Shown here piece after piece: positions 2,592-59,143 of a stretch of DNA of 64,000 bases. Source of the DNA: Trichoplax adhaerens (Eukaryota > Animalia > Placozoa). The notes beneath the pieces were generated by a model. That model made no database searches. It saw only the letters and a list, made by a program, of their open reading frames with translations, and was not told the origin of the DNA. Location: NCBI RefSeq assembly GCF_000150275.1, contig NW_002060947.1:2469740-2533739 (forward strand), written 5' to 3'. Numbering within the stretch: position 1 is the first letter of the stretch; each line of letters starts with the position of its first letter. The translations under genes were made by a program, and so were the position numbers.

Positions 2592-3237
2592 CTACAGTAC
2601 TGTACAGTACTGTATGTTTCTACTGTACCGTAGTGTACCGTACTGTACTGTACAGTACACAACATTACAGTACTGTACAGTACAGTACAACAGAGATTCA
2701 TAGTCGCACAAGAGAAGTGAACGCACTCGTATTACTAAAAAATATGCTGTATCAGTACGAGAGACTATTGAACGGCCGCTAGGCGTCCCTGATCAGTACA
2801 CTGTACAGTACAGTACAGTAGTTGGCTGATCTGCAGTATTGTACTGTACACTGTATAGTGTGATCCTTTTCCAATCCGATGAATCAGCACATATTATATG
2901 CGGGCATTTTTTTTACGAAATCCGTTATATTTTTTATATGTGGAAACAGTAAGCTCTCATGGGCATGCTTTTGCAAGTTTTTGGGGTCAATTAGATGTTT
3001 AAAACGTTTTTTTAACACCATTTATGGGCGTACCGTTATTCTTGTAAAAATTACAGTACTGTATACTGTACTGTAGTTGGTCCCAGTGTACAGTACAGTA
3101 GCATGGTTCTAGATACTGTACTGTACTGTACTGTACTGTATATTGTTTGGAGCCCTGATCAGTAGAGTACTGTACAGTGTACAGTACTGTACAGTACAGT
3201 AATGTGTTTACAACGAGTACAGTACAGTACTGTACAG
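2592..3237. repeat. Cluster of mixed (TACAG/TACTG)n arrays upstream of the Prickle-like gene
   Basis: For example TA-CAG-TA-CTG-TA-CAG-TA-CTG-TA at 2592, with further runs at about 2795-2860 and 3052-3237. Confidence 0.95.
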
Positions 3238-3366: not shown

Positions 3367-6300
3367 ATGGCTTTCAGTATGAGAAGGAGAAAGGTTAGTA
3401 ATTAATTTCTAAAATTTACTGTAATGTAGCGAAAGTATAAACTTTATAAACTTCACATAAAGATTTCATTAAACTATGTTAACTTGATACATTATGGTAC
3501 GTATGTAAGAAAAATATATGCTGACATGCCGTAGTGTGACCATACTATATGGTATGCGTAGTAAAATAATGTATAATTTAGCGATGAAATGAATGCGAAA
3601 TATCAGTATTACTGTCCAGTATAGCAATGTATACGTACGTTAGTTTTATCGTTTTTATGATATTAACCCTTCATGTCGTGAACCGTAAAGATTTTCCCTT
3701 GACCTAAAGTACATGACCATCATTAGGATAGTTTATCATGTAATTTTTGTTATCCTAAATAATTCATTATGAAACTCAGTCATGAGTTATATTACATGCT
3801 ATCAGAGTTTCATGCTAACAATTTAAGTATAACGAAAGTTATAATACAAGTCAATTTGTTACAGGGACTGCAAATTTTGTTTCAATTTTAACTGGAAAAT
3901 CAATACAAAATTGGTTTATAAATTAATATGCTGGATTAACATGATGTTGCACTATGTTACGCTCACTAAACTAAGTTAAACTCGGAGAATTGTAGTCGTA
4001 AATGAGATTCTGATGTGTATTTAACGTACAGTGCGGTTAAGGAATTCTCTTAGAGAAGTCCCTTGTATAGTCCATGTTCATTTAGTTAATTATAATAATC
4101 ATACTGCAGAGATGAAGCCTTTTCTTTACCTCTATGTTTTTTAACTTTCAAGTTCGGTCTTTCTTTTCATAGCCAGCAGAAGCAACTCGCGACTCTGATA
4201 CTGGCCGACCTTGCTTAAAATGTCGCCAAAAATGTCCTGGATTTTGTCACCACTCTTGGAGGTAAGAATAATCCCTATAGTTTTATTACATTTTTCATTA
4301 CTTGGACGTTTTTATGCGAAAGTACGTCTGGTAAGAGGATGTTGATGTACAAAAATGCGATGACTCAGACTATTTTTTACTCTAATATTGTATTGTCGTC
4401 CATCGCATGTCAATACCCTGCACAGTACTTAAAACCAAATTTTAGATTGAAATAAATATAAATCATAGTAGACCTTACGAATACTGTAGATAACATCAGT
4501 CGGTATTTTCAGTCAGAAACATCACATAGTATTTATTATAATTAATAATGCAATTCAAGATTGAAAGACGAATGCTTTCTACTGTAATTTATTATATGGT
4601 TAGGCCCTGAGCTGTAAAGCTTAAGCTTTGTATACGAGTGATTTATGTTGTTCTGTGATATCATGGTGCATATTTGTGTACTGTATACTGATAAAAATTA
4701 GAGACCTGTAATGTTTACCAATCGATTCATGAATATTACAGCAATGCCATAAAGTTTAGATACTATGAATTATACTGCATAAATCGACACTCAAGTTAGT
4801 GACGAGCAATGCCACGATAAACACTCAAATTAATGGACAGTTTCGATAATTCTGAAATCTTTCGTAGATTGGGCCTTGTTCGGAAAACACAGTCGTTTTT
4901 AACATCATTTTTTGAAATGTCTTAACATACTGTATGATATGTAGGTATGATGTTATCATGAACTGCTGAAAAAGTATCTTTAATTCGCATTTATAGCTTG
5001 CAGTATAGCATTGAGTGTAGATTATGCTGTGCGAAGAATAGTTTGAAAGAAATAGAAAATTAGTATTTGCGAAGGTATTGAAATTTGTTCAATATACCGT
5101 ACAGACATAGAATGCACTATGGTAAGCCGATATCATTTGCTGCCTTCGCTTTTTCATACCAGATATGAGAAATTATGTAATGCTGTACTGTATACTACAA
5201 TATCAGATAACAATATTTCAGTAAACCCATTCATGATGTCTATTTATGTTATACGATCATTGAACTCACAAAGAGAATATATATATGCATATCGATGAGC
5301 AAAGCGACTTTCTGATCAGAATATCGATCATACTGGTTTCTAATCACGGTTATTGGCTGTAGACCGTCAAATGTTGGCAACCTAACCTCCTACCATATTC
5401 TATCTCTACTTCTACAGTCAATATGAAAAATTGTTTCACACGAATCTCTAAAACAGGCTATGAAATTAAGCTAAATGTGGCCCAAAATTATTCTTATATG
5501 ACTTGATATGATCCTATAAGATGAAGTACACTTTTGAAACAAATCTAATTTGTGAAATTACATAAGTCTAAATTATTGTTCCGCAACCCTCTTTCTTATT
5601 CTTAAAGAAAAATTTGCCGTCACTGTAAATGTTCAAAGAGTGAACACGATATATTAGCCGATGATCATGAAAGATTTGTTGAAAAAATGATATTTGAATA
5701 TTATAAAGTAAATGGACTATCAGACTTTAATATAAATCCTGCGATTGAGGAATATGCATGGACGCCGCCCGCATTATCAATTCGACAGGTATTATAACGT
5801 AATATTTTGTAAGACACTTAAGTAATTCATGTATATTCGTAAGATCTGGTTGTACTCATTTGCATCAACTATAATATAATTAATTAATGTAGATTGAAGC
5901 CTACTTTGACTGCTTACCAAAAGAAAACGTTCCAATCATTGACAGTGTCGGTAAGATTTAAACAAAAGATTTAAACAAAATTACGGAATACGTTTTATAC
6001 TTTTACGTGCTTCCGTTCGTTAGCAAAGCTATCAAATATCGACTATTCGCTGTACCTGCATAAATTAAAATCGGTCAAGGTTTGCAAAAATAAATTATTC
6101 ATTTAGTAAAATAGCAGCTGGATTACGTAATTGATACTTGGTAGGTTAAAGATGTGATTCAGTTGATTCTAGCATTCTACATAGGAATTGAACAAGGTTA
6201 ACCATATCAAGTAATCTTTTGTAGATAAGGACTTCTGTAATACTTATCACAAGCATCCTTCCTATAATATAATGCGCATATAGTAACGTTACTTATGGGT

Positions 6301-8560
6301 TAGATGTCTAGTAATAAGTAAAATCTTGATAAAAAAGGACGTGCAGGTGTTTACAAAATGGCATTGCAGTAGTCCAAATGATCACCTATACAATTCGTAA
6401 AATGTAATCATTCATGCAACTTTCTTATTGCCTAGGTGATAGATACCGAATTCAACAGCTACTTTATCAGCATCCAGCTCATGACTATGACCCGAAATTT
6501 TGTTACCGGCTATCAGAAGAGGAGAAGAAAAAGCATAGGCAGTTTTCTGCTACACGCAAAAAAGATGCGTTTGGCCAAGCAACCGTGAGAACAATAGGAT
6601 CTAGAATGAATGGCCATGAATGCGCTGAAGTGAGTTATGCTACACCTTTGGTATAGTAAAAGTACCACCTTTGCTTAATTAAATTATTAGTCGCATAGTT
6701 ATGCTCGTAAGTTTAAGATCGACCTCACAGTTAATGTCATACTGTAATACCTGGATAAGATTCGATTTCTTGCATTTTAACTTGCTCTCGTAAAAAAATA
6801 TCCAATCACCACAATAATTATACAAATTACCTACGTGAATCAAGATTTAGAACCTTTTTAAAAGTTTCTGGAATTTTCTTAAAAACTTCTTGCTAATCCA
6901 GAATGTTGTTTTTAGTGTGGAGAACAATTAAATCATGGGGAGTTAGGATTATTCGCATCGCATGCAGTTCCTGAAAACTTGGTTTGGCACCCAGAATGTT
7001 TTATTTGCTGCGTTTGTGAAAATGGATTAGTAGACTTGATCTATTATTACAAGGATGGTGAAGTTTATTGTGGGCGGCATCATGCCGATTCCGTAAAACC
7101 TAGATGCAATGCCTGTGACGAAGTATTATTTATTTTATTTTTATATTCGTTTCTAATAATACAAAACCACATTGATAAATATTTTCCTGAATTAACAGAT
7201 AATCTTCACTGAGGAATGTATTCAAGCACATGGGCGAACTTGGCACACTGATCACTTTGTTTGTTACGAATGCGAATGTAGACTTGGTAGCAGAAATCAA
7301 TATATTATGAGGGATGGACAACCGTATTGTTGCAGGTGCTTCGAGAGTAAGTATAATGGAAATAAAGTTATCTGGGCTTAGAAATATAGTAGTACATCAT
7401 AGCTTAAATAGTGCCGTACTACTGAGTGCTGTATTAATAATGCGATAATATAACTGTTATAGAATGTCAGTACTATTGCACCTTATTTTTATATAGGTTT
7501 GTATGCAGTATATTGTGAATCATGCGGAGAGATGATAGAATTAAATGACGGTCACATGGCTCATAACGACATGCATTGGCACGCAAGTGATGATTGTTTC
7601 AGCTGTAGCGAATGTAATCAGTCTTTGCTCGGAAAAACTTTTTTGCCAAAGCATGGGAAATTATACTGTTCGGTTGCCTGTTTTAAGATAGGTCGTATGC
7701 CAAGCGAATATGGCGGTTCGGAGGAGTCTTTAGTTGAGTATAGCGACTGTGATATAAACCATCCGCAACCCCCTACTAGCAGTGTTAAAGACATTGGAGT
7801 TGGTATTAGAGGGCAACTAAATGTTATTCAAAATAGTAGCGAACGCAAATTGAAAAACTCTCAAACCAATCGGAAATACTGGAACCGTCATGAACAAGAT
7901 CATATAGGATCAAGCGAAGTCATTCCTGAATCATTTACAGGAGCTTCTTCAGGATTAGCGTATTCCAGGAGTCAAAAACTTAACTCCTATAGATCTCGCG
8001 ACAACAATGCAGAATTTTCGAAAAATAATTCCAATATCCGTCGCTCTAGATCTCGATCAAATGGTCATGACTCGGCTCAATCAAATCCGAATAATCAAAT
8101 AGAAGTAGAAACTGCTAGTGCAAATGATCATTATAATTATAATAATCCTACGAAAAATCCTCAGCATAGAAAATCTCCAAAACAAAAGAAATACACTAAA
8201 AATGAAACAATGGCCCTTGAGGGTCCCAGTTCAGAATTGAAATTTAAGAAATATTCGTCTATAGATAGAATAGGTGAGGGTATAGCATATGCTCAACCGC
8301 TTGACAGAATTAGAGAAGCGGATCAAAGTATTCTTGTTGCAAAAGGATATAAGAAATCGGAATGTATAACTGGTTCTTCGAGTGACGACTCTCAGCCCGA
8401 CACCAATGTGACTTTTAATTTAGTTGGAAAATTAGATATACAGAGAGGCAAGTCTCCACAAAAAGTTAGCACGGCTAATAGTTTTAACGAATCCAGAAAA
8501 GAGAAGAAAGTACGCATTGTTGATGAAGCCGTTGACAAATCAAAATGTATTGTTATGTAA
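3367..8560 (+). CDS. Prickle3/testin-like protein: N-terminal Cys-rich domain, PET domain, three LIM domains, disordered tail, CaaX (CIVM)
   Basis: GT-AG exons 3367-3393, 4173-4261, 5608-5788, 5893-5950, 6436-6629, 6916-7122, 7199-7346 and 7497-8560 join in frame. Motifs: [67 protein letters not shown], C-terminal KCIVM. Confidence 0.92.
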
Positions 8561-8760: not shown

Positions 8761-9957
8761 CACTTACTAATATATAATTAACTCTTGTCGTATCTGTTAC
8801 TCCTTCACTTAAAAACAAATAAATTGTATTTATGATACCGTAATTATAATTACACTGTAGTATAGAAACACTAGGTTAGTCTGTGCCACTACGAAATACT
8901 TTCCACTGTAATGTAGATAGTGAGATTGATAGATGGCGTAATTAGCTATAACTCCCCAAGACAATGTAATCTTACTCTGTTATGCAAACGTACATGTACT
9001 ATGGTATGCAGTAAATTCTACTGTACAGTATATTATATTCTGTATAATTATAACTTTCAAACTACAATTTTATACTCAGTATTACAGAATTTATCACGAT
9101 CTTGCCCTAACCGTAGCAATTGTTATACTGTTCTGTGGGTGCAACTTTGTGTAAGTATAGCGACGCAAAGTCTGTTGAGGTTCCTCCTAGACTACTGTAA
9201 GTGTACTGAATATCGTACACTTTCTTTATCTTACAGTACAGTTTTACCTATGAAATGTTATACTTTCATAAATGGGTAATTAATTTATTATTAATGATAT
9301 CATGCGCATTTTAGGACTTCGAACACTATACCTGTAAGGGTCTACTTTTGTTACAAAGTAAAATTTTAACTGTGTGCAATAGGGACTAATCAAATTATAT
9401 ATCCCATTTTGCAAATTTAAATAAATCGTCGCTTATTTTAAAGAATAAAGCATATTTTAGTTCATTGTAATCTGACTAATAATATTGACTATAAACTGTA
9501 AAAAAATTATAGCATATGCAAGTATAATCCTAGCAAAAATTCGAAATTTTGTTAGTACTCTGTTCACCAGCTGTCTTTCATTTAGGGTAAAACACTGTAC
9601 AGTATACGCTATGATATATCTTACATATGGAGAGACCTTTACACGTACACCATAGTGTAAATTAAGCCCCTAAATACAGTGAAACTAGACCTATAAAACT
9701 AGATCCGCATGAATTAACTCTTAAAATGTAGAATATGAAAGCAGAAATCTTCTAAAACATAGGTAACCAGTTATAAATAAAACATTTAAACGGCATTCTT
9801 ATAGCTGTAGATTTTAAACGAAAGAGCTAACGATACTTAGCAAAAAAGAATGAGAAATGACAGCTGTTTAATGTCATCAAGACACCGGTAATTGTACTCA
9901 TAGACCTAAAATGTTACTCTACAAAAATGGGTAGCTTTGAGATAACTAATCCCTGCC

Positions 9958-13700: not shown

Positions 13701-16700
13701 ACCTTTGCTGCATTTCCATATTTTTTTTTGCAGCATCCTGAATAGCAAGGTCCTTAATCTTTAGATCCTCTAAAGCCCTATGATAACGTAACTGAAAAGC
13801 AATACAAAATTACTTTATCTCTCTAACAATCATTACATTTTCAAATAACTCAGTTTATTTATCTGACATGCTCATTGAAACATACTTCGGCCCTCATAAA
13901 ATCTCTGGATTTTTGCTCTCTTTCGTCCGTCTAAATTAAATATTACAATTGGTTTATACCTGACCTCAAGACAACGTTAGCATAAAATCCGGAGATCTTA
14001 ATAAAATCATTTAAACTACATGTAGATCCGGCAAATGTAATGTAAGGAAGAAGAGATTTACATCAAATTTGGCTTGTAAATTATACATCCTTACAAAGTG
14101 AAGACATAAGGTACAATAAAATGCAGTAATAAACATCAGAAAATAGATTATCCAGAAAAGAACTTAGCGATACAACTCTTTGATAATTTATGTTTTAATA
14201 TGTTACCCGATACCTTTATTGCAACCATTCTGCCAAGGTCCATAACATCATCTCTTAATTCGCATTGTTGGGATATCAACAGCTCCTCTTCAGCCATACA
14301 GACTTCGACCCGATTTCTCTCAGTTGATGTTAGTGTATTCTTAACAGTAAGTAGTATTATATTGGACTAATTATAAGTAACGAAAGAAAAGACAAAGAGA
14401 ACAAATGATATCGGTTTGTAGGAGTAGTACCTGCTGTAAAAGTAATCGTCTAGCGGCTTCCACTTCCTTTAGTAATTCCTTCCGTTTTTGTTGTAAAGCT
14501 GTATCATCTTTTGGATGACTTTCTAACTATAAATTACAAAGTCGCATTCAATTGAAAGTACATTATATGCTACAAATATAATAGTAGAATTTTACCTGTA
14601 GCTTAGCTTTCGTGTGTATCGTTTTCATTAAATTATAAGCATCTTCAGACCCTTTCAATTGCAGTTCTATTTTCTTAACGTTTCTATGGTAAAAATCGTG
14701 CAATGTTTAAGAAGAATTACTGTGATCATAGCTAAAGTTAGAACGTAAGCAACTATACTTTAAGAAGCGTTCTTTCTCTCGCAATTTTCTTGCATTTATG
14801 TCGTGCTGATTTTTTCTTTCCAAATTTGCATGTCGTAGTTTTACTTCCAATGAAGCTCGCTGTTCCAGCAATTCCGTTTCTTGTTCTTTGCTAAGTTCAA
14901 ACTGTTTTAATAAAGTATCATATTCTCTTTCCTAATCTCAGTATAAAAGGTAGATAGATTTTCATTATTAAATTGATAAAGACTCAGTCTTCAAAACACT
15001 TATAAATTATTCATACCCGTGCTTCAAGCAACGCAAAACTATTATCGAGTTCTTCAGTAACATAAACCTTGTTTTCCTCTAGCCGCCGTCTTCTTTCATC
15101 AAGCTGCTTCAACTGGGACAAAAGTGTAATATAAGTATGATTTACATAAAATGGTTTATTTGATCATTTAAAGCCATCTCTCTATATTAATAAACCTCGG
15201 AGTTGTAGTCTTCTGCTACTCTATCTAATTCATCCTTTCTATTAGTTATATCACTAAAATAAAAAGTAACATTTATTTTATGATTTGCTTTGTTGCAATC
15301 AAATTAAAATATTTGCTAACTTAAATAAGTCAGGCCTATAAACAACAATACAGAGAGCTAAACTTCCATTTAGGATTTTTCCAAACTATCATTCAATAAA
15401 ATATATTAGCAGACCCCACACTCGTAATACTCGCGTAGTCTTTACTTGTACAGGTACAAGTTTTTGCTTTATGTACTCGTAAGTATGTACTCAATAGTAC
15501 ACACAAACACGGATAAAATTAACTTATTATATATAGGATATCAGGACAAGTAATAATATCACTTGATTTAAATATTTTAAAATATCCTTTGCATGTACAA
15601 ATTTAACTGTAGAAATTGTAGAGATCGTTAAAGACACAGAATACAAAAAGGAACATACCTTTTATTTCTAGCTAGCAATTCATACTGTTCATGTATGTTA
15701 GCGGGTTCTCCGTGTATTCGGACCAAGTCATCCTTCATATCATAATAGTAACAATGAAGAAAAGATCAACCTCTATTTTCCATCAATATGAAATTACTTT
15801 ACTCATTCCATTAGCTACTAACCTTTAAGATTGACTCTTCCTTCATATATTTATCCTAAAGAAATTATTTAATGTAATTTATATTTTATAAGTACGATAA
15901 TCATCAGAACTATTTACTAACTATATGTTTCAGCAAGATCTCATGATCATGTCTTTTAGCTTCAAGTTCCTCGCTAAGGTTCTTGATTTCTAATGTTCTT
16001 TGATCTACAGAAGCCTTATATTCTTTGCTATCCTTAGATAAATCCTTCAACTTCTTTTCAATTTCCTACCAGATCATTAAATTTAATAAAATAGAGTCAT
16101 GATCAAAATCATTCTTACTATAAGATTATTTTAGAAACTATTTAGACATTATGACTGACCGACAATTTAGGAATCCTTTCGTATTCGCGTTGGATTAATC
16201 GAACTTCTTCTTGTAAGCTATAATTAAATTATAGTTTAGATATATATGGGACTACCTGTTTATATTTTTCCCTACCTTTCTATCTCAAAATTGAGCTTAT
16301 CACAGCGATTCTCGGACTGGATAACTTCATTATGATGCTAATATAGATTTCAAGACGGTGATACGGAAACAAAATTGGAATATAATAAATTATAAGTTCA
16401 AGGATGAAAATGTGTAGCAATTTGAAAGTATACAAGAGTTCCCATATATTCAGTACCTGCAGTAATTCTTGTCGTAACTGACTGACTTCAGTTAAAGAAT
16501 CATTTTCAGGAAATTCTTCTGCCTTGCGTAAACTTTCCTTCTGCTTATGTACCGTCTACATATAATTAGCATTATGTATGTAATTATTCCATTTTTTAGA
16601 TTCTCTACTTGATAAGAACAATAATTTGGGATTTTCTTCGTTATTTGTTACCGTATCTAGCTGTTTTGCATCCTGTAACAGTTTAACTTCTTTATTTCTG

Positions 16701-27614: not shown

Positions 27615-30600
27615 CCTGGCAAGGTTCAAATTTACTGTTTGATTTGCTGTGCCTATAAGCTATAACCTTTTGACTGTGGTTTCGGATATTACACCTGAAA
27701 TATGTTCACCACCGAAGATTCGCGGAAAACCCAGGCGTCATGAAAGGAATGTGCGGATTTCGCCTGAGTATCCCGTTGCGTACTAGTCGGATACATTGAA
27801 TACTTTTTTAACAGTTGGAATATTGGCAGTTCGGCACAGTAAATTAAAAAACATGACGATTTCTGAACGACCGACCCTACTGCACCGGAATATCAAAATT
27901 TAACATATCACAGCTCCGATGCTATACTGTAATTTGTAGGTGAGATAGCTGGCACATTCACAATTTTTTACTTGTGAAGATCTTACGGTACAACTAAGCC
28001 TAAATAAGTACATCATACTATTACTATACGTACAACCTACTGTACTTTATCAGATTTTCAATAACATTATTTCTAGGACTACTGAGAAAAAATGTTTCCT
28101 TCTCTCATTTCGAGTATTGTAGTCTCTAATCACTCGACATCGTATCGATAATTCGATACGAACGACCATACTTTCTTAATTTTTTTTAAGGCGCCAATTA
28201 ACAACACGAAAATAAAAATATATATTAATATTTTATTTACTTTATTTTGCAAAGAATTAGATATAATCCTATCCGCTAATACTTTACACTTTTAAAGTAT
28301 ACTCGTATATGAGTCAGTAAGAATTTTAATGAAAATTATACAGCAATCATAATCTTAAGGCACTAATTAAGAGTACGAAAATTAAAAATTCATGTTTAAT
28401 ATTTTATTCATTAAGAAATTATGATAAATAATTTGTTTTGCTAGGAACTTGAGATTTGCCTATATTCCAGTTCATGGCATAACGAAAACACCCAGAGTCA
28501 AGCACCAAAGCAACGTTACCGCTACCGAAAATAACATCTCTAAATTATAGTTAAAAATTTGAAAAGGAAATGAAATCGAGTAATATACAGTACATCTGAC
28601 AGGTGCAAGCATGTAAATTTAATTAAGTTACATCATCCTAATATATAATTTATACTAGCAACTATCTAGTAACATTAAAAGTCCTAAATTAGAATGAGAT
28701 TAAAGTCATTCCTTCCTTAAAAGAGAGCAATATCGGACAAAAGCATCAATTTAATCGATGTAATAAAACTCTATTTTGATACTATTATTGTAAAAAGCAT
28801 GAAAAAAATTTATACCACTAAATTACGCTCGCTAGCTGTGAACTGTTTATTCGCACTTACTCAAGTTGGTTGATTTTTGGATTGTGCCATTTTGTTATAC
28901 ACATTTGAAAATTTAATTCATATAAGCTTGGTAATTGCTGTTGCCACCGAGCACTAAAAGAAGCATAAAGTCTTTCGAAATATATCATTCTTACCTTGAA
29001 TATAGCCGAATGAAGACATTTCGATGTAAATTATTTATATGAAAAACATTCTTCTTTTATCGAAACTTTATTTAAAATCAATGGTTGGTATTGCACAGTA
29101 GTATTTACTACTATACAACAATAATTTAGCTACGCCTTAACCTACTAACAATTATCAGCTACATAATGACAAAATAGTGCAATGTTACAGTGCGCTATTA
29201 ACGTAATAGTTAACATTACTATAAAATTGTAAGAAAAGATAGCTAACGAACCAAATATATGTACGCGTATACCAAATATTACTACGTAACATTAATTGCC
29301 ATTCTTCCTATTTATAACTACTATAACAACTGATTAATTTTTATAGTGAGAGGTTTGTAATAACAATTTCAGATCGTTTAGCCCAGGATCAATATCCAGT
29401 AGTTCCGAAATATCATCTTCCGCTGCTATTTATCAACAAAACATAAAATTTTATTAATTAATTAATCAAGAAAACCTTTTAAGCCATCCTTGTGATCGAA
29501 GGATGGCACACCTGTTCTCTACGCTAGGTAAATAATTAAATTTGTGATATATTTAGCTATTACCCAAATATCATTCTGTAAGATAAATGTATACTACTGT
29601 ACAATACTGAATAATTTCTGAAATATATCATCTTTTGTTTATATCACGTAAGTTCTAAGTATATCCCGCTATTGTTTGTTAACATTTAATGATAACAGTC
29701 ATTTCAACGAATTCTTCCTTTTGATAATATCTCTTTATATTCAGAAATTTAACTTACAAATATTAAGTTCTTTTACATCATCTATTTATTTGCTCATTGT
29801 TCCGAATGATAAGTAAAAAACGGATCAAAATAGATTAAATTAAAATTTCACAAACCGTGTAATAGACATCATATACCAGAATGAAAGATATTTCTAAGTA
29901 TGTACTAGATGTGACGTACTATCTTCAAGAAATTAAAGCTACTGTACTAAAGCACCCTACAGCAGGTAGTTACATCCGTGAATTATCTACCTTAATATTA
30001 AAAATAAAATTTCAAATCAAATATCAAAAATAGCAATAGTTCTCTAAATTGCTATACATAGCTAATGATACAGACCCTATCATCATTGTATCTGAAGGCA
30101 TGAATATCCTTGAAATTCTTATATTTAATTTTACAATGTCAAACTTAATCGCTACCGAAATAATAAATTGAAAATCAACCCATTAAAACTTTAAGTATCG
30201 ATGAAAGTAGTTTTACTTACTAAAGACAGACCTTTCAATGACATATTAAATAAGAACATAATTAAGGCCATGGTTAAGACTTATTTAATCAATTCAAGTA
30301 TTACAATATGAATTATAATACATAAGTAAGACTCTAAAAATCGGTACTCTAAAATTCTATTGATAGCTGAAGCATAAATAAGGCTATTTTCATCTTATCT
30401 TAGAGCAACTAAATAGAATGAACTCATCCTCAGACGCATTATACTATCGATACTAAAGAACTCGTTTCTGTTGTGAACATTGATCTAATGAACAAATATA
30501 GTATCACTACTGCTAAACCGAACAACCTTATACGGTGGAGTATCTATGTGTAGGTCAAATCTTTATGGAAGACGTATATCTATGTACAGATAATTGTATA

Positions 30601-32532: not shown

Positions 32533-33462
32533 ATGAGTAGTGCAGCTTTAATTACTCTGGGCTCCATGTCACTGGTTACCAATTCCTTTTTACTATCCTT
32601 CATTTGGTCTAAATCAGGTTTAAGGTCGCTCTCGACGGCTATTCTGCAAAGTATGCTTATCAATGGTATTTTATGGAGTATTTATGTAATAGTACGCTTT
32701 ACGGGACAATTTTCATCCTATTCTATTTATCTATGTATACTTTTACCGCGTCTGGGTCAAGGAATGTTCGTTAACCTAAATTTACACGCTTGTTTTATCA
32801 TGCTGGAACGTTACGTTTCGGTGGCGTTCCCGTTTCGATATGAGCGTTTAATCACCAAGACAAAGATTACTATCATTATTACAACTGTTTGGACATTATC
32901 CTCGATTATACCTATTACCGCCGTAGTGACCTTGAGTGAAAACAGTAACTCAATCAATAATTGTTCACTTAAATACGTGAATTCATTCGTTGTTGTCGAT
33001 ACAAATATTCATATTTGTTTGTTGGTTGTGGCCTGCTTCCTTCTAGTTATACTATTTTTAATTTACAGCAGAGTGATCTGTCTAGTTCGTACGCAAGAAA
33101 TCCGTTTGGTAAAAAGTTATACTTTAGAGGATACGGCACCAAATGATACTCGCTCTGTTCGCGTAAGACGCGAGCGAAAAGCGGTTATCCAAGCTATTGT
33201 AGTTTTCACATTCTATTTTACACTTCTGATGCCTTTCTTGTTATCATCTACTTTGGCATTTTATAATCTTACATCAACAGCACGATTACAAGCGGCATCT
33301 ACCACACGTTACTTAGCCTTTAGCTATCCTGCCATACAACCTTTTATCTATGCGTATTACACTGCCAATATTCGAAAAGCATTAATTAGTACCATATTTA
33401 AGAGAAAAACTGAATTCAATCAAATCAATACGATGAGATCCCCTAATATATCAACTCACTAG
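32533..33462 (+). CDS. Rhodopsin-class (class A) orphan GPCR, 7TM region in one exon
   Basis: Seven hydrophobic segments with the TM1 Asn, ERYVSVAFPFRY in TM3, the TM4 Trp, RRERKA before TM6 and YPAIQPFIY (NPxxY variant). A possible splice acceptor at 32504-32506 could add an upstream exon. Confidence 0.9.
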   Translation: MSSAALITLGSMSLVTNSFLLSFIWSKSGLRSLSTAILQSMLINGILWSIYVIVRFTGQFSSYSIYLCILLPRLGQGMFVNLNLHACFIMLERYVSVAFPFRYERLITKTKITIIITTVWTLSSIIPITAVVTLSENSNSINNCSLKYVNSFVVVDTNIHICLLVVACFLLVILFLIYSRVICLVRTQEIRLVKSYTLEDTAPNDTRSVRVRRERKAVIQAIVVFTFYFTLLMPFLLSSTLAFYNLTSTARLQAASTTRYLAFSYPAIQPFIYAYYTANIRKALISTIFKRKTEFNQINTMRSPNISTH

Positions 33463-38714: not shown

Positions 38715-39331
38715 CCTTAATTATAATTAGTAAAATGCAAGCACGGCAAAGAAACTGATGAAAAAGAACAAGTAGAGTATAGTACTACTAATGCCAAGAT
38801 ACCCAAGAGGGCCAAGAACAAGGTAGAAGCAGAATCATGCTACAGTACAGTACAGTAGGTTAACAGATGTCGATCAACATGTCGTTTGTACTGTACAGTA
38901 CAGCACAGTACAGTACACTAGTACAGTACAGTACAGTACTGTACTGTACAGTACGCCTCTGGCAATCAACTCGTTACGTAAAATTAGAACAGTACAGTAA
39001 TGTACAGTACTGTACTTCATTGCAGCATGCGGATGTCATGTGTTCACTTATTGTACTGTACAGTACTGTACAACACTCAAAAGTTTCTTAAGACTGTACA
39101 GGCCACAGTAACAGTACTTCGTACAGTACATAGACATGCAATAAGCTTGAAATGACCAGCAAAATAATCGACCTCCATATTTTAGTATAGCAAACGACGG
39201 TTTTCCGTTCCTTTCTTTCTTTTTATCCCTAATCACCGTCTGGTTTAGGTCTGAAACCTTTCACCATTTTAATACCGAAAACCAAACCAAAAATGTTTTC
39301 ATTTTATTACGAAGAAGGATTTCATCATTTT

Positions 39332-39576
39332 CAGATGGGTATCCGGGCATCCGTTTTTTAAGTGGCTGACATACTGTACAGTACAGTACTGTACAGTATA
39401 CAGTACAGTAGATGTTAGTTGGCAAGCCACTTTGATGAAGGTAATACAGTACTGTACTGTACTGTACTGTACTGTACACTGTACACTGTACAGTACAGTA
39501 TTAAGTTCATCAAAGTGGCTTGCCAGCTAACATCTCCGCCATCTTAAAAACGGATGGCTGGCCGGATATCCATCTG
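39332..39576. mobile_element. Foldback/MITE element with arms of about 70 bp; left arm and spacer interrupted by pentamer arrays
   Basis: Left arm CAGATGGGTATCCGG..GATGTTAGTTGGCAAGCCACTTTGATGAA; right arm TTCATCAAAGTGGCTTGCCAGCTAACATC..CCGGATATCCATCTG. Confidence 0.8.
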
Positions 39577-39623
39577 TAAACATACTGTAGAGGTTTTTAT
39601 TACCTCTACACTCTACAGTACAA

Positions 39624-39806
39624 CCGCTTTTACTCTTCTGAGGAGTGTTCATTTACTGTACTGTACTGTACTGCAGTACACAGTACCATTAAGCGCAAAT
39701 TAGGTTAAGTAAAAGAACGTAGTCGATGTGTCAACGCGCTTAATGGTACAGTACTGTACAGTACAGTAAATAATTTAATGAACACTCCTCAGAAGAGTAA
39801 AAGCGG
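39624..39806. mobile_element. MITE-like element with perfect 30-bp outer and 11-bp inner inverted repeats
   Basis: CCGCTTTTACTCTTCTGAGGAGTGTTCATT and CCATTAAGCGC occur with their reverse complements, separated in each arm by a pentamer array. Confidence 0.8.
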
Positions 39807-40487
39807 GTGGCCTAAAAGTGCCAAATATTTCTGTGGAGAAATCTCCTGTACTGTACGGAAGTTGCTTCCTGTAGTACAGTACTGTACAGTAGCCCTGATC
39901 ATTTTGCATAAATTACTTTATACACTTCGTTTAAGCTGTCCTACTGATACATTAGACATGTATTGACATATCTAAAAAAAAATAAAGAAATCGTCCAATC
40001 TCACGCGGCGCAAATCAAATTAGTGTCCTGCATCATCCCCGTGCGAGAAATTATATTATTTTTTACTGTTACTGTACTGTACTGTACAGTACAGTACTAT
40101 ACAGTAACAGTACTTTTTATTTTTTGTTTATCCTTTTACTGTACAGTACAGTATTGTACAGACTGTACAAGTGTACATTATGTACTGTACATATACTGTA
40201 CTGTACAATACTGTACAGTACTGCATTGAATCACTTTTTTTACACAACCGCATAGTACTGTACAGTACACTAGTGTACAGTGTACAGTATATCATACAGT
40301 ATTTTTACTGTTAATAAATACTGTAATAATAATAATTATACAGTACAGTACAGTACAGTACAGTATAGCGATTATACTGTACAATATACTGTACAGTACA
40401 GTACACTATACAGTATAATATAATATAATATAATATAGTATATACAGTATAATTAATTAAATAATTAGTTACATTACAAGCGAAAAA

Positions 40488-43400
40488 ATGGGTGCTGGAA
40501 CGAGCAAGGAAAAAAACGAAGACATGGATAATTACCGAAAATCATCTATTGACAGCTTAGAAGCGGCTGTAAATCAGGGAATTCTAACTCCGGAGCAGAA
40601 GGAAAAAGAAGAACGTAATCGAAAATTTCGTGCGCGTAAGGTACTGCCCCAGACTTTCTATTAGAATTAGAATTATTTATTCTACTGTACAGTACAGTAC
40701 TTGTGCAGTAACCGGATCTTGATGGTAAAAACTTTTTACCTTCAGCAATAATTAGGAAAGTCAATCAGACTATTAACTAATAGTAAGTACTGTTTATTGC
40801 ATCCCAGGAGCACATGTAATATACCGTAGTATCGCAGTTAGAAGTCTTTATACTTAGGCTTTACGGATCAACTTTATCTGATTTTGCAAATAGTCAATGT
40901 TTAAAATTCGTACCAGAATCTTATAAAAACAATAAAAACAAAACAAATACAGAATACGGTACTATCCTAAGTATCATCTCGGACCCCGGCTCACTCCGCA
41001 GCCTGTTGCCAGTTTTGTTTATTTTGTTTTGCCTTTTACAACTTATTTACCATCAGTACCGTTACCATTAATTATTAGACAGCGTCCTATTGTAATACAA
41101 TGCGCATTTTACGCACATAGTGTTCGATTTATCAACCTTCAACGTGGCGCATTTTTACAATAAAGCAACGTGTAAGTTGTGAGCGAGTAAGTAAATTCGC
41201 TCACTTACAGTTATTGAACTGATATCGGAGGTAGTTGATTTATCTATGACTACTAAAGAAATACCGGGTAATTCTTTCATTAGTCCACGATTTATCGCGC
41301 ATTAATCTAATCATATAAACGTTTCACGTTGGATCGGTGTCAGACAACTCTTAATTCTTCCATAAATAGATACTTTACCATCGCAGTTAAAATAATAATT
41401 CTACGCGTACTTTACTAATGGAGCACAGTCAATTTTTGAACTCAGTCTTGTAACTGGTACTGTATACTTCCAGTTAAATACAGTATAGTATTCCAGTAAA
41501 ATCCAGCTGTTCGTACAGTACATACGGTACAATGTGCAAATGTACATAACTGTACTGTACTCGTAATTTGTAAATTCTACGATATTTCATCCATATTGTG
41601 TACAGTACTAGTCCCCGTTTAGTTTGATGCAAATGACGGGGCTAATGTGTATTAATCGAGTCCATCACATGAAATGACTTTAAACAAATTTAAGACCACA
41701 AAATCTACGGTATATTGTAAGCCAGTATATTAGACAACAAACTATATTGTCTGTAATCTGTTTGCAACCATTAAAGGTGTATTATCCTTTTAATAATTTA
41801 GAATAACTTGATGGTTCTAAAAGAACTCTATCGATTGATGGATCCTTCTGTAAAGAAATCCGGTGATGCACAAGGAGAAGTTCAACTGTCTTTTAAGTAC
41901 AATGATGAACAATCGGCGGTATTAGTGAAGGTAAGCAACCGAGCATTATATCTATAACGATATACTGTAATTATTAATGTATTCTCCTTCATGGTTAGTA
42001 CTTTATAATAAAAAGTTTTATGAAGGCTATTGATTAAAGGTAACTCTTTCTCAGAATTCTCAGCTGGTAGTGAATAAACTAAATTCGTGCTACTATAGTA
42101 CCATCGGGTAGAGTCAGTTAATTTCGATTGAAATTATGCACCGTACAGTTAAAATGGCCAGTGAGATAGTCGGCATAATAATTTAATTCTTAGTCAACAG
42201 TCACTTCTGTCCTTCTCTTAGTTGCCTCTGGGTAGAATGCTATCCTTAAACAATCGAATCTCTATACTGTAGACACTTTTGAATAAATTACACTTTATGT
42301 ACTGTACTGTACGCGTATACTTTTATCAAATGAAACTTCTCTCGAAGTTCGGACTATACAAGTCGCAATTCAGAGTTCTCGCTAGTAAGCGTTTGAAAGT
42401 ACTACAATGCAGGAAATTCTGTTTGTTAGTATAATTAAATAGCGCTATTATAGTACAGTACTATACTTCTGTAAAGTAATAAAAAATTAAGAACATTGAA
42501 CGTGAATTGATTTTATTGCAATTGTTGTCAATTCGCTTCTTGAATTCTATTCATTTATTCTGTGTGAATTGCTTTATATATTGGACGATTTTATCGACTG
42601 AAACAAGCAGTAATTCTAATGATAAGATAACTGAACAAGCTTTGCCACGTGTAAACCTTATTTACATCGAATCTCTACGACAAATTTCTGTATTCTATAT
42701 TAATATCAATTATAATTATTAATACATAATCCCATGTTCGCTTGTTCAGTACAATATAGTATAAAATACATGCAATTACACAGTCGTTTAAAGTGAGCAG
42801 GTGGCTTTTTTGACTTATAGTACCTTATAGTCAATAAATGGAATGTATCTTTATCTCTAACAACTCATGACCATAGAGGTTTCTTACCTCTACGATCAAT
42901 ATTTATGACCTTAACGGACGATGGTAGCTATGTTAGGGTTATATAGTCATTCCGTATTAAAATAATATGTTTCGTACTCAGGTTTGCGTCAGTAACTAAC
43001 GTTATACGTATAATATGCACAGTTGGATTATCACAATAGTTATTAACTATTACTGTACTGTATGCATAGATTGCAAGTGTAACTTAACGTGAATGATAAG
43101 GGTAAAAAAATTTAAACCAATTTTGTAACGCTCGTTTGATTCAAAACCAAAATTGTGGAAAAACAGTTTTCCGTACTGCTTGTAGTATATCGAAAATTAT
43201 TAAGCGCTTTATGTTTTTTACAGTCATGCCATGCACGTATGTTAGCTTTTGTTATAGTTATGTAATTCAGCTTTCTTAAATTCTAGATCATTAGAGCCAG
43301 AGATCTTGCGATCAAAGATATTTCTGCTGGAACTTCAGATCCATATTTCAAAGTTGACTTAATTCCCGATCGCAATAAAGAAGGTGCTAAAAAAACGAGA

Positions 43401-53276: not shown

Positions 53277-56200
53277 TTAAACGGTGCTTTCAACACAATC
53301 ACGAGTGTGAATCTGGCCATAAGTAGGTCTTCGCCCCAATGCAACATGTGTAGAAGCTCTTCTTTCACTTAGACTTGAGCGGAAGGCATTGATGACTCGA
53401 ATCTAATAAAATCAATTTATATCATAGAATTTAATCTCCAACGAGGTAAGATTTTTCGTCCAAGCGATAATATCGAACGAACCTGCGCTTGAAGACGTGA
53501 TACTCCTCGTACCCATAATAACTATTATAAAAGAATTGAGTCACCGTATTAAAAGCAAACAAAGTCTAGATACAACACCTAAAAGAAATAATTACTCGTG
53601 CTCGGTTATCAGGAACTGAATCAGGTTCACTAATCGGATACTCTACTGGCTTCGTCCCAAATCTCCAGCTCTTGGGTAATTTATAACTGGGAATATAGCT
53701 AAGCATCACACCCCAAACGAGTTCGCCAGCTCCGAAAAATATGCACCAGAGCCATAAATCGAGATCGAGGGGTAAACAGTGGAAAGCTATCCCACCAGCT
53801 TCTACTAATACAACCTAAGCAATGTGATACAATTTACTTTCTCATACTTGAAATCATAATATTTATTGAATAAACCAATTAGTATCCGCTTAAATAACCA
53901 ATTTATACAAGCAAATACACTACGTTAATACTACATCATTTACCTGAACAGCGATTGTACCGAAAAATATTATTAAAAATATCGGATTCTTAAGTATTCC
54001 TTGAAGTACATTTCTCTCTCCATGAATTTTTCGAGCGTTGATTTCATTAAAGATCTATTAATGCGTATATAAGACTTACTGAATAATTCTTTTATACATC
54101 CAGTATGACTAAGACCTACCTGCATTTGAACAAAAGTATTAAATACCATAGTGAAATGTTTTGTAGGAACTAGCGAGTGAGCAGTCTCGTTTGCTCGACC
54201 TTCCTTAATATCAAATAAGACTTCTCCATAAAATATAATAAGAAACAGCACTGTCAGCTGATACAGGCAATGGCCTACGATATTCTTCGTCATAGTTCTC
54301 GATATTAAGGCCTTGTTACGTCCATACGGTTTGCGATTTAACAAATCGGGAGAAGGTAGTTCTGTTGCTAAGGCTAAAGACGCAAAAGTGTCCATTATCA
54401 GGTTGACCCATAGTAGTTGTACCGCCTTTAACGGGCTAGCCTGAAAGAAAGTACAGTAACGTATGATAACAGTTTAAATACATATCTGTGCAGCTGTTCT
54501 TTTTGTAATTTACCTGTATTGAAGCTGCTCCAATAAATGACGTTATGACAGCAGTAACATTTACGGTAAGCTGAAATTGTAAGAACTTTGAAATGCTGTC
54601 GTAAACATTTCTTCCCCACATTACAGCCTTCACAATACTACGAAAATTGTCATCAGTTAATATAATATCTGACGCTTCTTTTGCAACATCAGTGCCGGCA
54701 ATTCCCTAAGAAAGTGGACATAACATAATATGTTGTACAGTACTTGCATGCTCCTTTCAAACATTAAACATTTTATCACGTTTAATTAATGTATTAGTAA
54801 TTTACAGTTGGTACAATTACGCGTATGTAATTCATATTTACCATAGCAAAGCCAACATCCGCCACTTTTAGGGCAGGACCATCGTTTGTACCATCTCCTG
54901 TAACAGCTACAACATCTTGAATATTTTTACTTTGAATCAGGCCCTTTACTAACGTATACTTATCTTCTGGAGATGATCGTGCTAATACTCTTATTTTAGG
55001 GAGTAACTTGCTCATAAGATTTAAACTTATCTGAAAATGGTACATACATACGATATTGAGGACAAACAATCATCTACAACGAAATTGTCAATTTAGTAAT
55101 GTAACACAATACGTATACGTATTTTACATACTTTATTATGTTTATCTCGAATTCTTCTATTGAAGTCTTTTCCTTCAATAACTATAAATCCGTCATTTTC
55201 CGATATTATGCCACATTTAAGAGCTATTGATTTCGCAGTTTTTAAGTTATCTCCCGTAACCATCCTAACCACAATACCAGCACTTTGACATTGCTTTATT
55301 GCACCAGGAACTTCGGGTCTTACTGGATCTTCAATACCAACAACACCAATACAAGTCAAATCGTCTATCACACTCTCTTCGTCCTCCCAATTTACGAGAT
55401 TATCTATGCACGTATTTTCAGATTTATTTATATATCAGGAAAATATTTGAATACTCATAATAACACAAACTTAAAATCATTAATCAAATAAGATCTCTCC
55501 CTCAAGAAAATCGTACAGTTGTCTATATCCTTATAAGCAAGTCCAATAGTACGTAGACCGTTAGAAGCCATACTTTCCACAACAGATCTGATAAGATCAT
55601 CACGTTCTTCACTCGAGAAATCACTATCAGTGTACACATGCAACTAATGATTATTTTTCAAATTTAAATTCATTTCTTATCACTGTATCTCTCAATTACT
55701 CACTGAACAGCACCATCAGAATTAATGATACTACTGCACTTCTTTAGAATAATCTCAGACGCCCCTTTTGTATAAATTCTGCAGCCAGTACTCTTCGGAA
55801 TAGCGGTAGACATCGACTTACGTACCGAATTGAATGTATACACCTTAAGAAAGTTTTCCTCAGTAATTTTCTTTCGGTAATCATCATAATTACGATCAAA
55901 TTTCTTTACAAAGCCTAATAAAGCACACTCTGTTTTGTTTCCGACTTGGCCGGGTAACTGATCAGGATTTTCTGGAGGCGGCGGCTTTAGTAATATATTT
56001 GAAAGAATATTATAAGATCTGATGCTACCAGGTAAAAGAAAAACTAAGATCGATGATATACATACCGTAATCTTCGAAGTGTAACTACTATTTGTTGCTA
56101 TACCCTCGCAAAGTAATTCAATGTAGTTGCTGGACAAGTCATTAATAACTGGATCATGAGGATAGAGTTTTTTCCCTAAGTAGCTGCTAACTACTGTCAT

Positions 56201-57650
56201 ACGGTTTGTAGTCAGAGTTCCTGTTTTATCAGAACAAATTGCGGTTGCATTACCCATGGTTTCACATGCATCGAGATGTCTTACAAGGTTATTGTCTAGC
56301 ATCATTTTCTTTACTGAATAGGCCAAAGAAATCGTGACGGCTAATGGAAGGCCTTCAGGAACAGCTACTACGATAACTGTTATTGCAATAATTACGAAGC
56401 CCAGAAAGCGTCGGCTATGCGAAGGCACCCACGGTAGTTGTCCAATAGCATAAGTTTCGATGCAAAAGCGAACGATTAGGACCAGTAATGATAGCACAGC
56501 AATGCATAGGCCTACTTTACCAATTAATATTGCCAATTTATTTAATTTTCCTTGAAGCACTGATTTTTCCTAGCACAGTAGAAATTTGCATCAAGGTTAC
56601 AATTAAAAATTAATCATAAATAATATACAGAAAATTATACTTTCAGTCTTTTCTTCTTTTCCGGTTTCTCAATGTCGATTTCACCGTTCCCAGATAAAGT
56701 GTCATCTTCAATACGCAGATCCTCATCTTCATCGTCATCGTCATCATGAGCGTCATCAGCCATGTCTTTCTTTCCACTCATTAATGTAAAAATTATCCCT
56801 GATTGTGAATTAACACCAACAGCGGTTACGATCATTTTACCACTACCTTCCATTACATGAGTACCGGATAATAACATCAAGTTATTTGGTCCTTTTTTAA
56901 TTAAATCAGATTCGCCGGTAAGTGAGCTTTCATCCGTTTTCAAATCGTTGCTCTGGATTACAACCCCATCCGCAGGCAACAAATCGCCATACTTTACCTT
57001 TCAGAAAGATTGCTACTGCTATAATTATCACTACACAACTATCATATAGGCATTATCAAGATAGAAAATAATCGATCTAGATTTGTTATGCATACCTGAG
57101 CAACATCACCAACCACAATTTCAGCAATATTAATTTGCTGAACAGTTCCGCCTCGAATAACGGCGAATTTTTGTTCTTCCTTAATACGGTTTTTCAAGCC
57201 ACGAAATTGCTTTTCTTTAGTATAATCATTAAATGCCGTAACCAGCACAACAACAATTACAGAAACAAGAATAGCAACTCCTTCTATCCAGCCATTCGAC
57301 TCTATTTCGATCGTTAAGCCAAGGATAAGAGAAACTGCAGCAGAACACATCAGAATAATTAGTGTTAAATCCTGCATAGCCTCCCACATTAGGCGTAAAA
57401 ACGACTTTGCTTCTGGCTCAGGTATAACGTTGACACCAAACAGTCTCTTCCTTTCAGCAATGTCATCAGGATCACCACTTAAGCCTTCAGTGATAGAAGA
57501 CTTAAGGTAATCTTCGGTTAAAGCCGATGCATCTCCAAACATTTTTCCTAGTTTCGCTGCTCCCTCTCTGCCGCGAACTTTCATCAGTGTAATCAACTGT
57601 TCTCGTGTACATCTTATATTGCTATCCATTTCGTTTGTATTGCTAGTCAT
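53277..57650 (-). CDS. ATP2B: Plasma-membrane Ca2+-ATPase (PMCA, P2B type)
   Basis: [42 protein letters not shown], calmodulin-binding [23 protein letters not shown], and the C-terminal PDZ ligand ESTV*. Confidence 0.97.
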
Positions 57651-58494: not shown

Positions 58495-59143
58495 TACAGT
58501 ACAGTCCTACGGACTGCTAAAAGAGATTACAGTACTGCACAATGTACAGTACTACTCATTGTTCATTTGTTCAGTACAGCACTGTAACATGACAGTCGCA
58601 AAAGTCGCAAGAGTGATTTACTGTAGTTTACTGTACTGTACAAAGTACAGTGTACAGTGCATGGTGTTCTAACGGTGGGGTACAGTTATGCCTGCAAGAC
58701 TAGTCAGAGACTTTTAAACCTCAATTGGTAACAGTACCGTACACAGTACAGTACAGTACAGCATTCAAAGTTTTTACGCACGACCGTACAGTACAGTACA
58801 GTATAGCGATAGAGTGTACTGTACAGTACTGTAGCAGAAGCACAGTAACCGACGGTAGAGTACAGTACAGTACACTGTCCTGTACTGTACGTGTATGTAC
58901 TGTACGGTATAGTATTTGGTACCGTGAGTTCTAACGTAAAATACAGTACTGTACTGTAGAAATCAACACAGTACTGTACAGTACTGTACAGTACAGTAAT
59001 TAACAACGAACGAGGAAAAAAGGAATCCTATGACTCAAACTGGTGCAACCTGTATGCGGTAAGACTACAACGAGACGTGTAGTGTAGCCAGTGGCTTCTC
59101 TTGCAGAGACTGCTACGTACTGTACTGTACACTGAGTGTACAG
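58495..59143. repeat. (TACAG/TACTG)n cluster in the PMCA/IDH3G bidirectional promoter
   Basis: Arrays at about 58620-58660, 58730-58920, 58940-59000 and 59115-59143. Confidence 0.95.

Follow-up and report, generated by a model that had tools for sequence, protein, structure and literature searches.

The pentanucleotide ACAGT is the commonest microsatellite of the Trichoplax adhaerens genome; it has been known since 2010, and its abundance has so far had no explanation. It accounts for 78% of the pentanucleotide repeats, and 54% of its copies lie within 1 kb upstream of genes, with ribosomal-protein and kinase genes enriched (Wang et al. 2010, Biol Direct 5:18, PMC2871265). The same survey counted perfect repeats and proposed a transcription-factor site, with no mechanism; the mixing of A and T, the anchoring on TA, and the isolated units, all described below, go unmentioned there. 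The word "footprint" does not occur in it (PMC2871265), and we found no paper linking the repeat to excision scars. Here, we analyze a 64,000-bp stretch of T. adhaerens DNA, referred to as the window (C1410:2469740-2533739 of the H1 assembly, which comprises 105.6 Mb in 1414 contigs). Its positions 38841-40450 hold a cluster of 33 TA(CWGTA)n runs with 77 units (W being A in 45 and T in 32 of them). With the same genome, motif, and gene-upstream position, this locus is one of the published (ACAGT)n promoter repeat loci of the species.

The unit matches, letter for letter, the scar documented for Sleeping Beauty excision, TACAGTA or TACTGTA (PMC6943129), as claimed in a preliminary description that read the arrays as stacked Tc1/mariner excision footprints. 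The 7-bp product at TA is identical, both middle-base forms occur, and the net addition is 5 bp in both cases. In contrast to that system, neither a CAG...CTG-ended element nor a clearly competent Tc1/mariner transposase was found here, and the units are stacked in arrays, which is undescribed for Sleeping Beauty. An ordinary slippage microsatellite shares with the locus the whole-unit length polymorphism, but it consists of runs of identical units, whereas neighbors here are the same in only 55-57% of cases. Quasipalindrome template-switch mutagenesis, as described in bacteria and yeast, needs a nearby inverted template and drives a sequence toward a perfect palindrome. Its likeness to the locus lies in strongly folding quasi-palindromic arrays, A/T flips, and palindrome-forming additions; it differs in that isolated units here have no such template and palindromic order is not in excess. 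Our reading, which we judge plausible though somewhat short of probable, is that TA-targeted, scar-type insertion seeds the units, and that slippage and hairpin-driven change then remodel the arrays.

Form and abundance of the unit

TACAGTA (156 occurrences) and TACTGTA (136) are the two top-ranking 7-mers of the window, where control words of the same composition occur 1 to 17 times. The comparison with control 7-mers proposed in the preliminary description yielded, in 127 kb of T. adhaerens, 375 copies of TACWGTA; permuted patterns matched in composition, 1260 in number, have a median of 29. Canonical TA(CWGTA)n forms 183 runs in the window, totaling 292 units (127 singles, 27 doubles, 16 triples, and 13 runs of 4 to 6 units). 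The irregular CAG/CTG order noted earlier was borne out. The middle base is A in 156 units and T in 136, and neighboring units agree in 62 pairs and disagree in 47 (0.57, versus 0.50 under independence). Agreement pooled over 156 kb is 73/132 (0.55; z = 1.2), and the counts within the 38841-40450 cluster, whose runs cover 451 of 1610 bp (28%), are 25 and 19, respectively.

The mixture is restricted to two bases. TACNGTA words of the window have C or G at the middle position in only 27 of 319 cases, and units with other units on both sides carry the triplet CAG 34 times, CTG 32 times, and any other 11 times, the middle base never being C or G inside arrays. The remaining positions vary in ~6% of units. 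The unit is otherwise well kept, and only A and T share its middle position at random, a result that ordinary point mutation cannot produce.

Runs are anchored on TA, although the earlier statement that nearly all of them begin and end on it was too strong. Boundaries are clean at 106 of 183 starts and 102 of 183 ends in the window, and 11 of the 33 runs at the 38841-40450 cluster are clean, i.e., have neither G before nor C after them. The clean ends are nonetheless true ends. Decay of C to T or of G to A as their origin was rejected, given that a further unit, with its C or G mutated, follows on from only 5 of the 102 and 4 of the 106.

Over all window runs, the preceding base is G in 42% (20% in the background) and the following base is C in 44% (19% in the background); these features are correlated (odds ratio 2.7, p = 0.0015). 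This enrichment would be in keeping with selection that retains the words as sites where a promoter factor binds in either orientation, through a core of GTAC or ACWGT, the scar shape being coincidental. The upstream bias and gene classes reported previously (PMC2871265) agree with such a role, as does the position of the cluster in a promoter common to two divergent genes. We consider it improbable, however, since selection leaves unexplained how 5-bp units arise at TA. Moreover, arrays change fastest between haplotypes, unlike sequence under constraint; unit positions are not conserved between placozoan lineages; and isolated units are spread over noncoding DNA even where arrays are few.

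The unit can also be written as GTAC plus W, in which case an A/T flip is a single base change. Every GTAC pairs with every other GTAC, so that an array folds back on itself, and mixed arrays are predicted to form hairpins of -10 to -21 kcal/mol. The assertion that slippage does not readily flip units is therefore weaker than originally stated. These properties suggest a possible, if doubtful, explanation without any transposase, namely, a (GTACW)n quasi-palindromic microsatellite in which slippage lengthens and shortens the arrays, and inverted units and A/T flips come from priming on a fold-back or from a switch of template. Slippage is indeed at work on related sequences. A 7-bp variant of the unit (TGTACAG or ACTGTAC, i.e., TA plus CAGTG/CACTG) forms short arrays at 39471-39492, 40259-40288, 58637-58659, and 3171-3185, which show that variant units expand in this way. 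A quasi-palindromic process nevertheless predicts an excess of palindromic order, whereas 42 of 93 unit pairs have it, and it does not predict clean TA ends. Were it correct, the locus would be a natural animal example of quasi-palindrome-driven repeat evolution.

An asymmetry test, in which TACAGTGTA and TACACTGTA were found 24 times versus 3 for reversed-order controls, was set aside as nondiscriminating because a simple 2-bp duplication of GT or AC yields the same words.

Isolated units and the proposed insertion

Isolated units, defined as lying >30 bp away from every other unit, corroborate the scattered single copies of the preliminary description. There are 77 of them in the window and 140 in the 127 kb, where ~30 would be expected by chance (a 4- to 5-fold excess in noncoding DNA). 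They occur at ~1 per kb throughout noncoding DNA, array-poor regions included. Their flanking bases hardly depart from what surrounds TA in general (C at +1 in 28% versus 18%), and 56 of the 140 show no unit resemblance on either side. A process that copies neighbors cannot make these 56, and the quasi-palindromic alternative is accordingly unable to seed isolated units in unrelated flanks. The density of TACWGTA is at the chance level in long open reading frames (ORFs; 0.24 per kb) and reaches 3.25 per kb elsewhere, as expected if the insertions shift the reading frame. Isolated units, along with the nontandem strain differences reported below, are the strongest evidence for an untemplated, TA-targeted insertion.

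The building block would be CWGTA added at a TA. In the mechanism that we propose, an untemplated, TA-targeted 5-bp insertion with the chemistry of Tc1/Sleeping Beauty excision repair would seed the units. A transposase, we infer, would make the cut. Both broken ends would keep the TA plus a 3-nucleotide CAG overhang; the overhangs would pair with a central A-A mismatch, which would be resolved to A or T at random. Each event would make a second TA, often in a GTAC context, so that hits could pile up. Once clustered, units would be reshaped much faster by multi-unit slippage, deletion, and hairpin-driven template switching.

Isolated units might alternatively be fragments of arrays captured at breaks elsewhere, in either orientation, through polymerase-theta-type templated insertion or short-tract ectopic conversion. 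Insertion of ACAGT inside a TA in either orientation gives both unit forms, and random orientation follows. On the other hand, no repair pathway is known to insert exactly 5 bp at TA, and templated insertions usually copy within tens of bases, a distance at odds with the >30-bp spacing of isolated units. We regard fragment capture as a remote prospect, even though one strain difference and the alignments of other placozoan-like lineages, both presented below, speak for it.

Single-unit differences between strains

The comparison of H1 with Trichoplax sp. H2, including a stretch with both H2 haplotypes assembled, is new here. Four H2 regions were aligned to H1 (~79 kb, 414 substitutions). The H2 scaffold has two N gaps within pentamer arrays (L012:16810-16829 and L012:18804-18823, corresponding to window positions ~39348 and ~39884), at which the contig ends overlap by ~750 bp and represent two unmerged H2 haplotypes. 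One haplotype is near H1 (0.1-0.2% different), and the other differs by 1.35% in unique sequence. These unequal distances fit the finding that H1 and H2 have one allele in common at most loci and have been clonal since (Kamm et al. 2018, PMC6057997). Gaps of this kind, with haplotypes overlapping, readily supply comparisons among three alleles.

The aligned regions contain three isolated 5-bp differences in which CWGTA is present or absent at a TA; none of the three, a small sample, is a tandem duplication. First, the H1-like H2 haplotype has an added CTGTA at 40441 (site 40436-40449), at the middle TA of TATATA and beside an isolated TACAGTA. It is missing from both H1 and the divergent H2 haplotype and, with the latter as the outgroup, reads by parsimony as a recent gain, being the single event to which a direction can be assigned. 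Second, at 41487 (site 41476-41492), a canonical CAGTA is present in H2 in addition to the H1 sequence, at the TA within TAGTATT. The neighbor there is a degenerate TAG unit; the added CAGTA is thus no tandem copy, and, as neither a direct nor an inverted copy of its neighbor, it argues against the quasi-palindromic alternative. Third, at position 16138 of its stretch C1409:340654-361000, H1 carries an additional CAGTA, placed at the TA within CCCTGTAGG. Taken as a whole, three array-poor regions (60 kb) held a single pentamer event, this third one, and the array-rich region (window 22.5-43.5 kb) held at least seven, two of them at isolated sites.

The preliminary description had named, as an observation that would speak against it, new units arising only as duplicates of an adjacent identical unit and never at lone TAs; the three nontandem differences are not of that kind. 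Its picture of stacked insertion and excision cycles held in part: 5-bp CWGTA differences at TA do occur, one of them a gain, but most of the change in arrays is multi-unit or length neutral.

Isolated sites differ between H1 and H2 by substitution in six cases and by a 5-bp indel in three, which is about the balance needed if insertion replaces mutated sites. A recurrent form of the former, TACAGTA versus TGCAGTA (A/G at the second base), makes up two of the six, at position 15741 of C1409:340654-361000 and position 7395 of the reverse-complemented C1409:408500-430500.

The TAAATAA of H1 at window positions 40458-40464 corresponds to an isolated TACAGTA in the divergent H2 haplotype. The three changes fall within 7 bp, add only 1 bp in length, and stand in surroundings that are 1.35% diverged. 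The change looks clustered or conversion-like, and it is the strain difference that favors fragment capture.

Array turnover and other placozoan lineages

The observations on array turnover, other lineages, and the missing donor that fill this and the next section weigh against scar-type insertion. Of 22 array blocks, 18 are not the same in H1 as in the divergent H2 haplotype. Their length changes are +10, -43, +9, +51, -25, -22, -15, -31, and +23 bp, with a few of ≤5 bp, and there are at least 10 apparent A/T flips at unchanged length. The stacking of one scar at a time does not explain multi-unit indels (mostly 9-51 bp) and length-neutral flips. For instance, a run of three CAG units at 38841-38857 has five units, one of them CTG, in the divergent haplotype (+10 bp), and a long compound array with irregular joints at 38887-38954 (predicted fold, -21 kcal/mol; z = -2.9) is 43 bp shorter there. 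Haplotype indels of 5, 10, 15 bp, and more represent whole- or multiple-unit length polymorphism. The arrays are the fastest-changing sequence here, and most of their change does not proceed in single 5-bp steps. Such turnover at 1.35% divergence speaks for the quasi-palindromic alternative, as does the missing donor; slippage acts on arrays without accounting for how the unit arose.

Palindromes pose a related difficulty. The run at 39746-39768 has the units A,T,A,A in H1 and A,A,A in H2, the extra CTG unit (39751) being unlike both of its neighbors. This unit, the 40441 gain, and the C1409 event each form a palindrome with the neighboring unit, a perfect one in the latter two cases, so that fold-back copying could also make them.

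The unit was further looked for in placozoan-like contigs on which two Trichoplax receptor genes have an orthologue or a close relative (66-74% identical). One lineage has 11 isolated units in 7.5 kb, and two others have 3 each in 6.7-7.9 kb, slightly above chance; the excess of TACWGTA is strong in L018 and weak in L030 and L032. In a 3.5-kb alignment of two lineages (78% identity), five isolated units face substituted sequence of the same length instead of an empty TA. The aligned sequence carries 2-4 changes per 7 bp, a pattern that fragment capture accommodates. Judged from these alignments, the sites would fit decay of old units and would not fit a fast, continuing insertion in the lineages concerned. 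The A/G difference at the second base recurs here, with TG at four of the five sites compared across lineages (L018, L030).

Search for a donor element and a transposase

Neither H1 nor H2 has active transposons according to published surveys (Wang et al. 2010, PMC2871265; Kamm et al. 2018, PMC6057997). The first of these put transposons at 0.13% of the H1 genome and reported few ORF-complete mariner/Tc1 matches, which are single copy and have no terminal repeats (PMC2871265). We searched the genome with profiles of PF01359, PF12762, PF13358, PF01498, and PF03184. The mariner domain PF01359 had no match in the genome, and neither did PF12762. PF01498 (Tc3-type helix-turn-helix) matched four decayed relics or fragments without terminal repeats.

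PF13358 (DDE_3) matched one gene (L001:895-1971; C1409:3537595-3538671), which encodes a 358-amino-acid protein with HTH_28 and DDE_3 domains. It is single copy, 100% identical in H2, and has orthologues of equal length at 53-54% identity. All three placozoan-type sequences lack the first catalytic Asp (WIAEISF, WIGVANF, and WLAVAHF versus WIDETNF), which distant relatives keep. Going by these residues, the gene is probably a domesticated transposase, read as a DNA-binding protein. Among the relatives of this protein, P0009-P0012 (Logan contigs, 388-401 amino acids) join a RING finger at the N terminus to a DDE_3 transposase domain that appears intact.

PF03184 matched three pogo-like genes, L013, L014, and L015, with intact ORFs (HTH_Tnp_Tc5 plus DDE_1), all of them single copy and devoid of terminal repeats. 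L015 and L014 correspond to the supplementary entries of Wang et al. 2010 matching Mariner-34_HM and TIGGER1, respectively. Each of these two has lost one catalytic residue. L013 (L013:1042-2616, minus strand, on C1396) is a 525-amino-acid ORF with a full DDE_1 domain, of which the public gene model covers only 254 amino acids. It keeps the D, D, and E residues (with QPME replacing QPLD). Its nearest relatives outside its own cluster are at most 42% identical, and no exact record of the pogo-like protein was found in other assemblies. As single-copy, intact ORFs without terminal repeats, L001, L013, L014, and L015 resemble domesticated Tc1/pogo transposases of the CENP-B, Jerky, and TIGD type; L001, L014, and L015 each lack a catalytic residue, and a connection of any of these genes to the repeat is hypothetical.

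No TA/CAG...CTG/TA donor with terminal inverted repeats was found at any transposase-like locus. Within the 127 kb, 16 TA/CAG...CTG/TA pairs have terminal repeats versus 15 reversed-order controls, i.e., there is no excess, and no large H1/H2 indel has ends of this type. The preliminary description had itself made its reading depend on a CAG-terminated Tc1/mariner family in the lineage, and domain and terminal-repeat searches found none. The 40441 gain adds to the difficulty: since it is recent, the responsible agent should still be present. With no scar-leaving element found, a transposon origin is no more than likely. The form of the repeat still fits the Tc1/Sleeping Beauty scar too closely to dismiss, even though no donor belonging to that system turned up.

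One way to reconcile scar-type insertion with the missing donor, speculative and in our opinion unlikely, is that placozoans keep a TA cut-and-rejoin activity without a conventional transposon family, with ACAGT as its running log at open promoters and perhaps as a promoter element. This activity might come from a gene of pogo or Tc1 descent that has no terminal repeats; L013, with its D, D, and E, is an example. Another possible source is a single-copy element that moves without multiplying and is thus missed by repeat-based annotation.

Should the units indeed be excision scars, transposition and not slippage would be the origin of an entire class of microsatellite, and one of the most transposon-poor animal genomes would carry ~100,000 or more records of transposase activity (extrapolated from ~1 isolated unit per kb), at least one of them a recent event within a clonal lineage.

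Several segments were considered as inserted elements. A 359-bp TA/CAG...CTG/TA segment at 9239-9597, with TACAGTA on both sides, was a candidate but was set aside: it has no second copy, and reversed-order controls have terminal repeats at least as good as its own. A 1764-bp pair at 3862-5625 was rejected as chance, as its terminal repeat spans only ~17 bp and it holds no remains of a transposase. In H2, insertions of 406 bp and 1083 bp relative to H1 are found at window position 30457 and at position 1927 of C1409:340654-361000, respectively; neither has terminal repeats or an N gap.

Palindromic repeats and genes at the locus

A local 245-bp palindrome, present once in the genome, spans positions 39332-39576, with one array in the left arm, missing from the right arm, and a second at its center. 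It starts with CAG and ends with CTG, and it was rejected as a mobile element on account of its single copy and TT/TA flanks; it is a local inverted duplication. A second palindromic repeat at 39623-39806 consists of two arms and has two dispersed copies (L008 and L009). The same site holds ~6, 4, 1, and 2 units in the two arms, L008, and L009, respectively.

The whole cluster lies in a shared promoter/intergenic region of 1.77 kb (38715-40487) enclosed by two gene starts facing apart. The minus-strand gene starts at the ATG at 38714-38712, opens with MEKYLGIF, and continues into a GTAAGT splice donor; the H2 gene call orthologous to this neighbor carries an Ac45-VOA1_TM domain. The plus-strand gene starts at the ATG at 40488 and opens with MGAGTSKEK. 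Rfam had no match within the window. Gene parts were taken from single ORFs and reference-given exons, and the H2 orthologue of one window gene is 99% identical. Other coding content of the window includes a single-exon class A G protein-coupled receptor (32533-33462), exons of a plasma membrane Ca-ATPase (55700-57650), and an exon of a LIM-domain protein (7499-8560).

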